NCBI GenBank assembly: GCA_040357565.1
Contig: JBDODJ010000122.1
From: Cercozoa sp. M6MM
Lineage: Eukaryota > Protista > Endomyxa: Ascetosporea
Length of the DNA stretch: 33,754 nucleotides
Direction: 5' to 3' (one strand)
Position 1 is the first letter of the stretch. Each line of letters starts with the position of its first letter. Made by a program: the position numbers and the translations under genes. This document shows positions 1,807 to 16,276 of the stretch, in pieces. Under the pieces are notes generated by a model. It saw nothing but the letters and a program-made list of their open reading frames with translations. It had not been told where the DNA came from and ran no database searches.

Positions 1807-2215
1807 GTTGTTCTCCTGACTGCACGCGTGTCTGTGGCGCTCTGCTGCTACTGCTCCTACCCACTCCACGACAGTACGGTGATGGTCAGTGCTCAATGTT
1901 GTTTTTGGCTTGGCCCTTTTACGATTATTTTGGTACCTAAAACGGCTGGCCACGTCGTCGATCAGTACGATGAGGTTTGAAGCACTTACAGAGCTTTCGA
2001 CGTCACTTCTTCTCTGTCGCAGTCGCTTATTTTCTTAAACGCGACACGGGTTCCATGAACATTATGGTTTTTTCTGCGCTACTTTGGTATAACTTTTTGA
2101 AAAGAATCTGGAGTTTCGGAATGTGGCTACACTTGAAAACTGGGGAATCCAGCCTCGGCACCTTCCTGTATTCCGAGCACCTCCAGTGTCCTAACAGTTA
2201 CCATAGAAACCGAAA

Positions 2216-4140
2216 ATGGGCCGTAAGAAGGTACGCCACATTTCTTGAGTTGTGGGTTTGGGGAGTTTTTTGTCGACGCGCGGGTGGATCTTCGCGCTTA
2301 CAGAGCTTGAGCGAGCCAAAATTGTGCGTGTTTGCTCATTTTTGTGTCTGCTGGCGATGTGTTTTGGGTTTTCTGGACCCACTTTTTCGTGTTTTGGTTT
2401 TTGTGTTCGGTTCGTGCGTTTTTCTTGAGTTATTCTTGAGTTTTCATCGGTGGGTTTGCGTGCAGACGCGTCCGAAGCAGCCCAAGGCGATTTTCTGCTA
2501 CTACTGCGATCGCGAATTCTCCGACGAGGAGCAGCTGGTCGCGCATCAGCGTGCAAAGCACTTCCGATGCACACATTGCCGGCGTCAGGTAACGCGTGCT
2601 GTACTTATATGGGAGAGTGAGAGAGATGTATACTTGCTTGCCACTGCCTGGGTTGGATGCACCACAATGCCATCTGTGTACTCGCGCACTCTTTGTTGTT
2701 TTTTGTTTTGTGTCTGTCCGTGTATGTCTGGTGGGAGGATTGGGTGCAACAGCATTGTAGTGATGAGCTACACGATGCTGTAGTTACGACACAGTAGAAT
2801 AGCACAGAGTATATGAATCCCCACTCAAACACACCCATACACAACATTGTTGGCCCGTTTTCTCATTGTGCATTGGATCCCTTTTTGGCGTGCAAGAGTG
2901 TTTCGTTTCTGTGATTGCCGAGAGTGAGAACGAGTGTGTTGATGTAATGTAGTTGCGAAGTGTCAACGGACTAATCGGACACGTGTACGCCATGCACAAG
3001 GTGGCCGTCACCAAGATCCCCGAGGTACTGCTTGCTGCTGTGCTGTGTCTGTCTGTGTCTGTGTCTGTGTTGACACATGACTGTGGCTGTGGCTATGTGC
3101 AGGCCAAGGCGGGCCGCGAGGACATCTCGCGCCAGATCGTCGGCATGCAGGGCGTGCCGCAGGAGATGATTCACGAGTGGCTGCTCGTCCACCGCGGCGT
3201 CTCGGTTGCTGGTAGCGCCGTCCCTGTCTGTCACATCACGACGTTTGGTGTGTGTATGTGTATGTGTGTATGTGTGATATGTGTGTATGTGTGAGAGTAG
3301 AGGAGCCGGCGCTCAAGAAGCAGCGCCTGGCCGGCAGCTACAACCCGTACCTGCAGGCGGCGGCCACAGTGCCGGGCCTGCAGCGGCCGTACCCGCACGC
3401 GGCCGTCCCGGTGCCGGCAGCGCAGTACGGCGTCGTGCCGATGGGCTACCCGCCAGTTGGCTACCCTCCTGTGTACCCCCCACAGCATGCTCACGTTGGC
3501 CATGCGGCCATGCCTCCGCACCCGATGCACATGCCGCAGATGCAGCAGGCGCAGCCGGGCATGATGCCGCCGCCGGCGCACGCACAGCAGCCGCCACACG
3601 CACAGGTACAGACACAGGCGCAGGCACAGGGACCTGGTGTGCCGTCGCAGCACAGCACGCCGGGCAGCAGCGCCGTGACGCCCACGATGAGCGCGTCGTC
3701 GTCGCGGCCGGCCAGCGCGTCGTCGCACCAGTCGCCCGTGGCCGTTGCTGCGGTAGCCTGTCATCTCTATATATATATATATATATGTGTATATATATAT
3801 ATATATGTGTATATATATATAGGTGCTATATATAATGAACATACGCATATATATATATATATATAGAAGATATCTGGCTATAGATATGTTGTAACAGGAG
3901 GCACCGCGAGTGTCGCCGAAGCAGGAGCTGCTGAAGCCGCTGGGTGCCGCTGCCACTGGCGTTGCGGCCAAGAAGAAGAGCGTGGTCGTTGTGTTTGGCG
4001 CCGCCGAGTCGCCGGTAGGATTTTGACCTGTCGTGTCACATGCGCCTGTATCGTGTGTATGTGTGTGCTTGTGTGCTTGTGTGCCACAGGAGGAAGTGCG
4101 AGCGAAACTGGCGCGCTACCAGGTCGCTGCAGCCGCATGA
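2216..4140 (+). CDS. ZNF207: BuGZ/ZNF207 (SUF4-like) zinc-finger protein, 7 exons
   Basis: MGRKK / TRPKQPKAIFCYYCDREFSDEEQLVAHQRAKHFRCTHCRRQ / LRSVNGLIGHVYAMHKVAVTKIPE / AKAGREDISRQIVGMQGVP.., a Pro/Gln-rich middle, and C-terminal SP/EEVRAKLARYQ (GLEBS-like). TGA at 4138-4140. All introns are GT-AG and in phase. Confidence 0.93.
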
Positions 4141-13265: not shown

Positions 13266-13848
13266 TTTCTTTATTTTTTATTTATTTATTTAGATATATA
13301 TATATATATACTTGTAGACGGCTGGACAAGCATTGCCAGGTGAGCAACTGGTCGCGTCGACCGCTGCGCGACGACCAGAAGATGTACGCCGCCTTGGATG
13401 CGCTGGCTCCGGTACCAGAGTGTTTTCCGTACTGCCTGTGCTGTGTGTATCGATACTCTGGACTGTGCTGTGGTGTCCCGGGCAGGTCAAGGTGGCCATG
13501 CAACTCGAGCAGCGACGAGAGCACCTTGCTGCTCTGCTCGCCGCCTCTGACAAAACGCTGCCGACACTGGGCAGCATGACGAGCGACGTCGTCGTTGTCA
13601 TGGTACTCGATCCATCGGATCAACCTGTCTGGTTTCAGTCAGAGTCTTTAATTCAGCTTGTGTTGTGCCTTTGGTGACTGGAGTTTTTGCAGAAGGAAAA
13701 GAAGTCCAAGAAGAAGAACGCGAGCGACAATGAGAGCAGCCACAGTGCGCAGAACAAGCGCACCAAGCAGTCCAACCATGACGCCGAGCCAGAGGACTGG
13801 ACTTCGCAGAAACGCCGGCGCACTCGGGCGCCTGTCCCAGGCTGCTGA
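11521..13848 (+). CDS. DEDDy 3'-5' exonuclease, mut-7/EXD3/WRN-exo-like; start uncertain
   Basis: ExoI VIGMDTE; WLQVATPKAVFLIDL; ExoII LVLK/VGFAFDGDMHEL; GLSKVAMHVLG/RRLDKHCQVSNWSRRPLRDDQKMYAALDA (ExoIII YxxxD); basic C-terminal tail. TGA at 13846-13848. Confidence 0.9.
12312..12451. repeat. Intronic tandem repeat, 24-nt unit TCTTGTATTCTTCCACTCTTTCCA with partial units
   Basis: Read directly; lies inside an exonuclease intron. Confidence 0.9.
13220..13310. repeat. (TTTA)n then (TA)n intronic microsatellite
   Basis: Read directly. Confidence 0.9.
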
Positions 13849-14053
13849 TTCGTTACAGTAATATTTTTGCGTCGATTACTCAGCAGAAGCTCGAGTGGGC
13901 CACGTTGGCTTCCAGCCATCCAATAAATGCGGAACATGTCATGAGTTTCCGCGCGCGTTCCGGGCCTTCTGCACTCTTTGCTCGAACGTTCGCCAAACAA
14001 AACTAATCACCTGTCTTGTTAGTCCGTGTGTGTGTGTTTGCTACCCTAGAGCC

Positions 14054-15324
14054 ATGCAACTGTATCTGCAGATCGTAGACAACGAGGATCTTGTCTGTAG
14101 CATAGTTTTCTGGATTTTTTGTCCATGTCCCGGCAACATGCTGTGTCTTAGACGGCGATTCGCCGGCCGGCAAGGGACTCATTCCAATCGATAACTTTTC
14201 GTTCGGCTTGGGCCGCGCCTCGTCGATGGTACACTGTCACTATGTACTCGCGAGCCTGAATGTGGTCAGTATTGATCTCGACTCAGTCAGGAGATGCCGA
14301 GTACAGCGTGTCGTTCCCGTCATTGTCGGAAGTGGTAGTTGAGTCTCCCTTGACCCTCTCATACTGCCTGACCTCCCTTTTCTCGGGCAGTCGCTGTCAC
14401 GTGCGATGGACTCAAATTCGCGTCTGTTCATGTCGGGCTCTTTGCGACCCTCGGCGCAGGTAGCGTTTCTTGTGCTGTGTGACTGACCGGACTGACCTGT
14501 GACCTGACTGACTGATTGACTGACTGATGGTGCGAGTGCAGAGGAACCCCAACGCTGCCTACGGTCGCTTCGGACGGCGCAACAACGACGACGACGAGGA
14601 CGACTGGCAGCCGGACCCGGACTACGACACGCCGGCCGGCGTCGGCTTCCTCACCTTCCGCATCGTTGCTGTCGACGCACACGGCTCGCGTGTCTCGGAG
14701 ATCACGCTCAGTGTAGGCTCTACATGTCTGTGGATGTGTCTTTTTCTGTGTTTAGATATATGTATATATATATATATATATATATAATATGTATATATAC
14801 TGGTATACATGAGTATATATATATATATATATAGATATGATATGCATCTGCAGAAGGCCATGATCACGAGCTACAGTTTCCGAATGGACGAGGAAGAGGC
14901 CACCGAAAGCATCAGCATTGGTTTCAAGAACATTGCGCACGTAGCCTTGTCCTGTCTTCCTACCTTGCCTCTGCCTTGTCTGCCCCCGGCCCCCCCCCCC
15001 CCCGCCTCGGAGGAGGACTTCCCGTCGGAGAAGGCCGCCGTGGAGTACAACATCGACAAGAAGAACATGCTGCAGGCGGCCACACTCGCCAGTGTCGTGG
15101 TAGGACACACACACACACTTGGCATGTGTATGCATCGACACGCACACTCATTCCTGCACAGACCAAGTACGAAACCAACGACGAGTCCGAGGAGACCGCC
15201 GAAGAGGAGGCCCAGCTGCAAGAGACCGCTGGTACACTCGCTTCTCTTTCTTGCAGGGTGCTGTGTTGTGCCTGTGTCTGTGTCTGTGCCTGTGTCTACA
15301 CAACTGCCTTCAGAGGAACAGTGA
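14054..15324 (+). CDS. hcp: Hcp (type VI secretion / contractile-tail tube protein)-like protein, 9 exons, about 220 aa
   Basis: Exons 14054-14096, 14152-14228, 14287-14334, 14391-14459, 14542-14712, 14854-14940, 15013-15099, 15162-15231, 15314-15324 splice in phase to MQLYLQIVDNEDLVYGDSPAGKGLIPIDNFSFGLGRASSMSGDAEYSVSFPSLSEVSLSRAMDSNSRLFMSGSLRPSAQRNPNAAYGRFGRRNNDDDEDDWQPDPDYDTPAGVGFLTFRIVAVDAHGSRVSEITLSKAMITSYSFRMDEEEATESISIGFKNIAHEDFPSEKAAVEYNIDKKNMLQAATLASVVTKYETNDESEETAEEEAQLQETAEEQ*. It has the Hcp motif series in the correct order. Confidence 0.82.
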
Positions 15325-15708
15325 TCCGTACTAGGCCTTCCAATCGAATGTTAACTAAGTTGCACTGTCACCTGGACTCGCACAACTCCATTCGATCGAT
15401 GCGACGGCCGAATCAGTCGAATACTAGGGCAGGAATGGAAACGGAAACGACAGTCAATCGTCGTCTCAGTTGCGTAATTTTCATGTATTCTTGACGTAAT
15501 TGCCTGCTTAAAGGAGTCATATTTTGCGTATTTACGGCGTTATTCTGTCTCCGCGTAATTACGCCGCCAGAACGATCGCAGAGTGTTAGAAATCCACCTT
15601 CTTTAAACTACCAATAATTCACTCACTCCGAACACTCACCCTTTGAGTCCACCAAGTGCACAAAGCAAGGTACGCAGTAACCAACTAGGATGGTGCGAAT
15701 TAACGTAA

Positions 15709-16276
15709 CTACTGGCGCACCACAATGACCGGGACCTGCACGTGGTGCAGGATGTGGTCCGACACGGAGCCGAGCAGCGTGCGAGCCACGACGCCGCGGC
15801 CGCGCGTGCCGAGGATGAGCGTGTCGACCTTGTGCTTGTCGACCTCGAACATGATGGCGTCACGCGGGTCGCCCGACACCACCGTGGCCAGGTAGTGGAG
15901 GTGGTTCTCCTTGAGCAGCGCCGTGTACTTGTGGATCAGCACCTTGGCCTCCTCGACGGCGCGCGTGCGCACCTCCTGCAGCGCGTCATACACGGCGGCG
16001 GCACCGAGGCCGGCCCACGACGACGCCACGTCAATGTCGACGGCCGTCACCAGCACCACGAGGTCGCCCTCGCGCAGGTGGTTCTCGATGGCCCAGTGCA
16101 CGGCGCGCTCGGCGTGCTCGCTCGCGTCCACGGCGATCATGATCTTGCGCTGTGCATTGTCAGTGTTTGACTCGCACTACACACCATCATTGAAAGCGCA
16201 CTACCTTCGGCTCGAAGTGCACCGGGCGCTCGCTCTTGGTTTCGTGGTGACGCTCGGGCTGGGTGTCCTCGGGCAT
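15709..16276 (-). CDS. Universal stress protein (UspA domain), 2 exons
   Basis: Exon 1 16276-16205, exon 2 16149-15709. RKIMIAVDASEHAERAVHWA..GDPRDAI..LILGTRGRGVVARTLLGSVSDHILHHVQVPVIVVR; ATP-binding USP motif G-2x-G-9x-GS. TAG stop. Confidence 0.96.

Follow-up and report, generated by a model that had tools for sequence, protein, structure and literature searches.

The tube protein of the bacterial type VI secretion system (T6SS), Hcp or TssD, forms hexameric rings with a pore of ~4 nm in all solved structures. It binds small effectors in this pore and acts as their chaperone, and its rings stack into tubes in cells only together with other T6SS tail components (PMC4632598). An Hcp-like gene is present at positions 14054-15324, plus strand, of a 33,754-nt stretch of contig JBDODJ010000122.1 (hereafter the window) from the amphizoic marine amoeba M6MM, which is deposited as Cercozoa sp. 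M6MM and has since received the name Lemnamoeba sinaloensis (Rhizaria, Apofilosa). The likely explanation is a nuclear gene of this amoeba that descends from a bacterial T6SS Hcp/TssD gene, is kept, and acts alone. The amoeba protein resembles bacterial Hcp/TssD in being collinear over its full length from residue 1, in its predicted beta-barrel-plus-helix fold, and in the invariant Gly of the G-[DE]-S motif. In contrast, its gene is nuclear and has eight introns, the protein is only ~25-31% identical to bacterial Hcps, it carries an acidic insertion and an acidic tail, and no T6SS genes were detected nearby or, in a weak search, genome-wide.

Orphan and specialised bacterial Hcps, among them effector chaperones and forms with extension domains, have rings that bind other proteins and tolerate C-terminal additions (PMC4632598). 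They still need a T6SS for export, whereas the tail of the amoeba protein is short and acidic and has no toxin domain (no Pfam match). The T6SS Tae amidase toxins have reportedly been transferred to ticks, mites, and other eukaryotes, where they are called Dae, for domesticated amidase effectors (Chou et al. 2015, Nature, a paper cited in PMC4832377 and PMC8713801). Like the amoeba Hcp, the Dae genes are T6SS-linked bacterial genes that gained introns and host expression signals and are kept singly without the secretion machine. However, the Dae proteins belong to the enzymatic cargo, for which an antibacterial use is obvious, while the amoeba Hcp is a non-enzymatic, structural tube/chaperone subunit with no obvious solo use. 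To our knowledge, the eukaryotic acquisitions from T6SS loci are enzymes, namely the Dae amidases, and Hcp is regarded as strictly bacterial and machine-bound. No account of an Hcp encoded by a eukaryote was found in full-text literature searches, and neither Hcp nor secretion is a topic of the genome paper (PMC13746701). By analogy, the transfer of a structural subunit would be a new variation on the Tae-to-Dae theme, represented by one gene in one species.

The predicted product is present in the NCBI protein database as MES1911154.1 ('hypothetical protein MHM6MM_003637 [Cercozoa sp. M6MM]'). It was recovered from 1.84 billion representative proteins with the open stretch of exon 6, intron 6, and exon 7 (14854-15099) as query. 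Three other matches to this query were rejected as proline-rich similarity to the translated intron 6. Whole-protein comparisons used MES1911154.1, which consists of exons 1-8 and a read-through tail; the last three residues of the nine-exon model (exon 9) lie outside them.

On sequence comparison, the predicted spliced product is a true, very divergent member of the Hcp family, and the presence of an Hcp homologue in eukaryotic DNA is nearly certain. The Pfam profile T6SS_HCP (PF05638) matches it with 26.9 bits (E 6.3e-6, curated cut-off 23.5) in two stretches, the best of which places residues 128-165 on profile positions 92-127. PF05638 is also the precomputed database Pfam label of MES1911154.1. 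The original prediction, made from the DNA letters and the motif blocks of the Hcp family, had expected this profile match, and its blocks are visible in a 23-sequence Hcp alignment, where Gly16 is the sole invariant column. In alignments with bacterial Hcps the strand-defining residues are kept and the loops have diverged. Comparison by hhalign with an alignment of 22 bacterial Hcps, from which the amoeba protein was excluded, gives a probability of 89.7 (E 1.8e-6) over 135 columns and residues 2-172, and comparison with the closest bacterial subfamily gives 97.0 (E 1.2e-10) at 31% identity. BLASTP against single bona fide Hcps reaches E 8e-9 at 29% identity, with another match at E 4e-6; the matched bacterial proteins have 124-134 bits on PF05638, and the members of the closest subfamily 99-134 bits. 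The amoeba protein obtains 35.7 bits in phmmer and 40.0 bits with a hidden Markov model of the subfamily (domain 1 at residues 24-73), compared with at most 5.2 bits in 500 shuffles of its sequence.

Other searches gave null results. NCBIfam TIGR03344 does not match the protein, and bona fide bacterial relatives of the nearest subfamily also fall below the cut-off of that model. No family was assigned in the NCBIfam and PADLOC searches, Pfam found nothing in six single exons or in the open stretch from exon 6 to exon 7, phmmer against PDB sequences returned chance matches only, and a six-frame PF05638 search of the genome missed the Hcp-like gene itself. The Hcp identity that had been claimed is borne out by the agreement of profile, pairwise, profile-profile, and structure comparison.

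The predicted structure matches the Hcp fold, a two-sheet beta-barrel flanked by one helix. An AlphaFold2 (AF2) model made from an alignment of MES1911154.1 and 22 Hcps has a predicted local distance difference test (pLDDT) score of 80-95 in the core (residues 1-70 and 116-170), a low score at residues 78-115, and a disordered annotated tail. Its best PDB matches in Foldseek are the Hcp1 structures 4w64, 3eaa, and 1y12 (E ~1e-7), and the matches of an all-against-all structural search extend to residue 199-202; the AlphaFold monomer and Foldseek check proposed earlier thus agrees with Hcp. Of the 30 ESM Atlas clusters that are nearest in language-model features, 29 consist of Hcps, and the single-sequence Atlas model compared with an Hcp cluster model has template modelling (TM) scores of 0.67/0.82 over 144 residues. 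An oligomer prediction with three copies of residues 1-205, in which the alignment was not used, scored 0.06 against a mark of 0.32 and counts neither way.

Structure comparison also bears on a rival origin, from a virus or from the tube protein of a phage tail or of an extracellular contractile injection system (eCIS), instead of T6SS Hcp. The tubes of eCIS (Pvc1/Afp1), R-pyocins, and phage tails have one common fold with the amoeba protein, at VIA-align Z 7-10.5 (eCIS tubes 9-10.5, phage tail tubes 7-9). T6SS Hcps are clearly higher, at Z 12-15.2 with root-mean-square deviations of 1.9-3.4 Å, and the structurally more distant tubes show no sequence signal. The Pfam match is to T6SS_HCP, the pairwise match of E 8e-9 is to a protein named by NCBI as T6SS tube protein Hcp, and the tree described below puts the amoeba protein inside a T6SS Hcp subfamily. 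This origin is highly improbable and was rejected.

Two additions differentiate the amoeba protein from its bacterial relatives. After the helix, exon 5 encodes an insertion of ~25-34 residues (~89-113), which is rich in Asp, Glu, and Pro and has nine acidic (D+E) and four basic (K+R) residues. It is a gap in 22 of 22 bacterial Hcps, coincides with the low-pLDDT stretch 78-115, and is probably disordered. The C-terminal tail of ~20 residues has eight acidic residues and no basic ones. The overall isoelectric point is 4.3, compared with 5.4-5.9 in the bacterial relatives.

The gene is composed of nine exons, joined in phase through eight GT-AG introns, in the following model:

14054-15324, plus strand: whole Hcp-like gene, from start codon to stop, nine-exon model.
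14054-14096, plus strand: exon 1, residues 1-14 plus one base; first beta-strand with M-x-L-Y-L-Q-I, which aligns with the bacterial N-terminus M-P-I-Y-L-Q-I; same border in MES1911154.1.
14097-14151, plus strand: intron 1, 55 nt, phase 1, GTAGCA...TTAG; removed in MES1911154.1.
14152-14228, plus strand: exon 2, residues 15-40; G-D-S motif (invariant Gly16) and FSFGLGR strand.
14229-14286, plus strand: intron 2, 58 nt, phase 0, GTACAC...TCAG; Hcp alignment unbroken over the junction.
14287-14334, plus strand: exon 3, residues 41-56; its 3' end is the S-F-P-S-L-S-E-V block, which matches S-E-P-S-V-S-E-V of alphaproteobacterial-type Hcp.
14335-14390, plus strand: intron 3, 56 nt, phase 0, GTAGTT...GCAG; Hcp alignment unbroken over the junction.
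14391-14459, plus strand: exon 4, residues 57-79; strand and Hcp helix (M-D-S-N-S-R-L-F), aligned to F-D-S-S-S-P-K-L-F; AF2 helix at 66-70.
14460-14541, plus strand: intron 4, 82 nt, phase 0, GTAGCG...GCAG, with (ACTG)n-like repeat fill.
14542-14712, plus strand: exon 5, residues 80-136; acidic lineage-specific insertion, then two core strands.
14713-14853, plus strand: intron 5, 141 nt, phase 0, GTAGGC...GCAG, (TA)n-rich, GC 0.24, in-frame stops inside; Hcp alignment unbroken over the junction.
14854-14940, plus strand: exon 6, residues 137-165; I-T-S-Y-S and T-E-S-I-S-I-G-F strands, the best-conserved part.
14941-15015, plus strand: intron 6, 72 or 75 nt, phase 0, in frame and stop-free, with a long C-tract and a tandem NAGNAG acceptor.
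15016-15099 (alternative start 15013), plus strand: exon 7, residues 166-193; MES1911154.1 uses 15016.
15100-15161, plus strand: intron 7, 62 nt, phase 0, GTAGGA...ACAG; removed in MES1911154.1.
15162-15231, plus strand: exon 8, residues 194-216 plus one base; last predicted strand (AF2 193-197), then the acidic tail.
15232-15313, plus strand: intron 8, 82 nt, phase 1, GTACAC...TCAG; proposed in the original prediction, kept as coding in MES1911154.1.
15314-15324, plus strand: exon 9, last two full codons plus TGA (15322-15324); model only.
15232-15494, plus strand: alternative 3' end of MES1911154.1, read-through to a stop at 15492-15494, protein of 303 aa.

The nine exons sum to 660 or 663 nt, that is 219-220 stop-free codons by three-frame reading and short-anchor border placement, which confirms the ~220 aa first proposed. 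The introns are 55-141 nt long with the phases 1,0,0,0,0,0,0,1, and all eight have a GTA[C/G] donor and an AG acceptor. Since only 297 of the 2392 GT dinucleotides of the window have the GTA[C/G] form, eight such donors out of eight are not due to chance. The (TA)n and (ACTG)n fill, which had been noted along with these donors as the intron style, is found in introns 5 and 4, respectively. MES1911154.1 joins exons 1-8 at identical borders and shares seven introns with the model. The alignments with bacterial Hcps pass through junctions 1 and 4 and continue unbroken over junctions 2, 3, 5, and 6. This continuity is independent proof of the latter four introns, as chance splicing would not produce it. 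For intron 7, the homology support is the structure match, which reaches residue ~200. The putative intron 8 has its splice signals and a drop in GC content at third codon positions (GC3) in its favour. Splicing of intron 6 is expected because bacterial Hcps have no insertion at that place; its retention would add ~25 Pro-rich residues within the conserved strand region. The ATG at 14054 is the first of its frame, and the alignment pairs the first residue of the amoeba protein with the first residue of bacterial Hcps, which indicates neither an N-terminal extension nor a signal peptide.

The 3' end differs between the model and the NCBI protein. GC3 is 0.70-0.93 in the exons, compared with 0.48-0.50 after position 15231. 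The read-through tail of MES1911154.1 comprises 87 codons with a GC3 of 0.49 and matches TG/CA-repeat translations genome-wide. Intron 8 with a short last exon therefore appears to be the better reading, as an unproven model, and the 303-aa C-terminus, probably a mis-annotated 3' end, was rejected. Just 3' of the gene, at 15470-15564, the DNA contains repeated 'cgtaat/gtaatt' words.

The Hcp-like locus lies in eukaryotic DNA. The M6MM genome has 23.7 Mb and 53% GC (PMC11069148), with 13 introns per gene that average 82 bp, and its genes lie a median of 162 bp apart (PMC13746701). The gene fits these published intron and spacing figures. Its exon GC3 is 0.79, compared with 0.80 and 0.96 in two neighbour genes, and its intron GC is 0.47. 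Contigs from the best DNA sequencing run tile the gene and both flanks at a similar depth of 408-620 and are interrupted only by (TA)n and poly-C tracts. A bacterial contaminant or a chimeric assembly could be suspected, since bacteria were present in the sequenced culture and NCBI's contamination screen flagged 0.6% of M6MM genes (PMC11069148). However, spliceosomal introns are foreign to bacterial genes, an intron-bearing eukaryotic exonuclease gene lies ~200 bp away on the same contig, the overlapping contigs cover gene and flanks evenly, and no close relative is present in the bacterial genomes or metagenomes searched. Contamination is thus extremely improbable and was rejected, in line with the earlier view, which host-type introns, host-like GC3, the exonuclease neighbour, and even DNA depth bear out.

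The relatives of the protein were sought among bacterial Hcps collected from genomes, with only Pseudomonadota sampled for the tree. A profile search found the closest subfamily, a tight 158-aa group. Its NCBI-named members, from Azorhizobium, Pseudoxanthobacter, Aquabacter, Azospirillum, Mesorhizobium, Nitratireductor, and others, are mostly alphaproteobacterial. A maximum likelihood tree was made of 27 bacterial Hcps and residues 1-205 of MES1911154.1; the rows L113 and L125, which had no matching open reading frame, were dropped. The amoeba protein is placed inside a clade with 97/95 support formed by this subfamily, where its branch is very long (3.13 changes per column). This nesting inside bacterial Hcp diversity is what the bacterium-to-protist transfer of the original prediction would give, and the phylogeny against proteobacterial Hcp was among the checks proposed for it. 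A word-indexed search of 5.8 billion proteins returned only the amoeba protein itself, and searches of genome contigs and metagenome contigs found no close bacterial relative and again only the amoeba protein. A single-protein query of 401 Pseudomonadota genomes gave noise apart from one weak Hcp match. The nested position, the linkage to host genes, the host introns, and the lack of a eukaryotic homologue in weak searches support a putative eukaryotic gene acquired from bacteria. A donor of alphaproteobacterial type is suggested by the subfamily, as a lead and not a result.

Several points weigh against a kept gene of this descent. The AF2 model is partly circular, as it was built with an Hcp alignment, and AF2 without an alignment gave a pLDDT of 34.7; the ESM Atlas model is thus the sole alignment-free structural support. 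The profile used to retrieve the closest subfamily had the amoeba protein among its sequences, the tree is limited to Pseudomonadota, and long branches are hard to place. Relaxed constraint would likewise agree with a branch as long as 3.13 changes per column. No orthologue was found in other eukaryotes by protein database searches and no paralogue in the amoeba's own genome, and selection is hence not measurable. The six-frame searches for partner genes are insensitive with tiny exons, as PF05638 missed the Hcp gene itself. The sequencing contigs that cover the locus are unspliced DNA only.

The very long branch, the missing RNA evidence, and the lack of orthologues and paralogues, together with an NCBI label of merely 'hypothetical protein' and a Pfam score just 3.4 bits over the cut-off, are also what a neutral relic of an old transfer would show. 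Its frame would be open by chance or recently released from constraint, and it would encode no useful protein. In contrast, ~220 codons run over nine exons without stops or frameshifts, the splice sites of all eight introns are canonical and of the host-preferred type, and exon GC3 is fully host-like, with lower values in introns and in the 3' region. The Hcp strand residues are kept while the loops have diverged, and the language model still recognises the fold from a single sequence. Free drift over ~3 changes per site would not keep frame, splice sites, GC3, and fold, which disfavours the relic and makes it unlikely. The gene is probably functional and expressed, and it is a reasonable inference from these sequence features that it is domesticated and still maintained.

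The kept gene would derive from the horizontal transfer of a bacterial Hcp/TssD gene, most like the subfamily with mainly alphaproteobacterial names. The transfer would be old enough for eight intron gains, the adoption of host codon usage, and divergence to ~25-30% identity. The product would be a complete Hcp fold; its N-terminus matches the bacterial one residue for residue, which points to a protein with no signal peptide that is probably cytosolic. Selection would have kept the gene, as suggested by the intact frame and the preserved fold pattern on a very long branch.

The protein would act alone, outside a contractile machine, as no sheath, spike, or PAAR gene was found. The window shows no sheath, VgrG, or PAAR gene, as stated in the original prediction, and a weak genome-wide search adds none. 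In this six-frame search of 23.6 Mb, VipB/TssC (PF05943), VipA/TssB (PF05591), Phage_GPD (VgrG, PF05954), and PAAR (PF05488) had no match over the cut-off. A second Hcp-like locus was not found in the genome with MES1911154.1, two Hcp profiles built here, and PF05638 as queries; the sole own-genome match of one of these profiles is exon 6. The genome-wide check for paralogues and partners thus found no Hcp paralogue, VgrG, PAAR, TssB, or TssC, within the limits of an insensitive six-frame method.

The blindness of these profile searches to the Hcp gene itself and the 13 introns per gene of the genome (PMC13746701) leave some room for a full contractile or projectile device encoded by the eukaryote, with further components that would be too divergent or too split by introns to detect. 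The sequence of 23.6 Mb without a VipB, VipA, Phage_GPD, or PAAR match, and the window with nothing alike, argue against it, and such a device would need transfer and intron gain in >10 genes. In tube-protein structures the helix side faces outward and is the sheath-binding side. The insertion and the tail would add charge and disorder at this presumed sheath-binding side. A complete device is very unlikely.

The stand-alone Hcp would be a ring, hexameric like the solved Hcps, that binds partner proteins inside or near its pore, as in effector chaperoning. Ring formation is about as likely as not. Tube formation would be unlikely, since Hcp makes tubes in cells only when the other T6SS tail parts are there. 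Any particular cellular role is improbable. Decoy immunity is a distinctly doubtful proposal, in which a cytosolic Hcp ring binds and neutralises Hcp-dependent toxins injected by T6SS-armed bacteria into the cell or phagosome; here the acidic insertion and tail would keep the ring soluble and prevent stacking. A building block of a eukaryotic projectile organelle is less likely than the decoy.

If kept on its own, a tube/chaperone subunit would show a useful Hcp ring activity outside the secretion machine. The system offers a simple experimental handle, with one small soluble protein, a culturable amoeba, and a chromosome-level genome. It would also be a clean, datable bacterium-to-rhizarian transfer followed by heavy intron gain, with eight introns in 660 nt.

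The neighbouring features of the window are as follows:

13318-13411, plus strand: exon of the upstream 3'-5' exonuclease gene (PF01612, 26.2 bits, 31-aa exon), with introns on both sides.
15709-16140, minus strand: downstream convergent gene with a Usp domain (PF00582, 90.8 bits), the complete domain in one exon, GC3 0.96.
1977-2780, plus strand: frame with a zf-C2H2_jaz dsRNA-binding (double-stranded RNA-binding) zinc finger (25.8 bits), a eukaryotic domain.

The exonuclease exon lies ~640 bp upstream of the Hcp start codon, and the exonuclease gene ends ~200 bp before it. A 196-nt contig from a small 2022 run labelled as another organism covers the 3' end of this upstream gene (13692-13878) with two differences. 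The same run has nothing over the Hcp-like gene, and it may come from a related strain or from RNA. The introns of the exonuclease gene have AG acceptors and the donors GTACCT, GTACCA, and GTACTC, and one of them is a long (TTTA)n tract.

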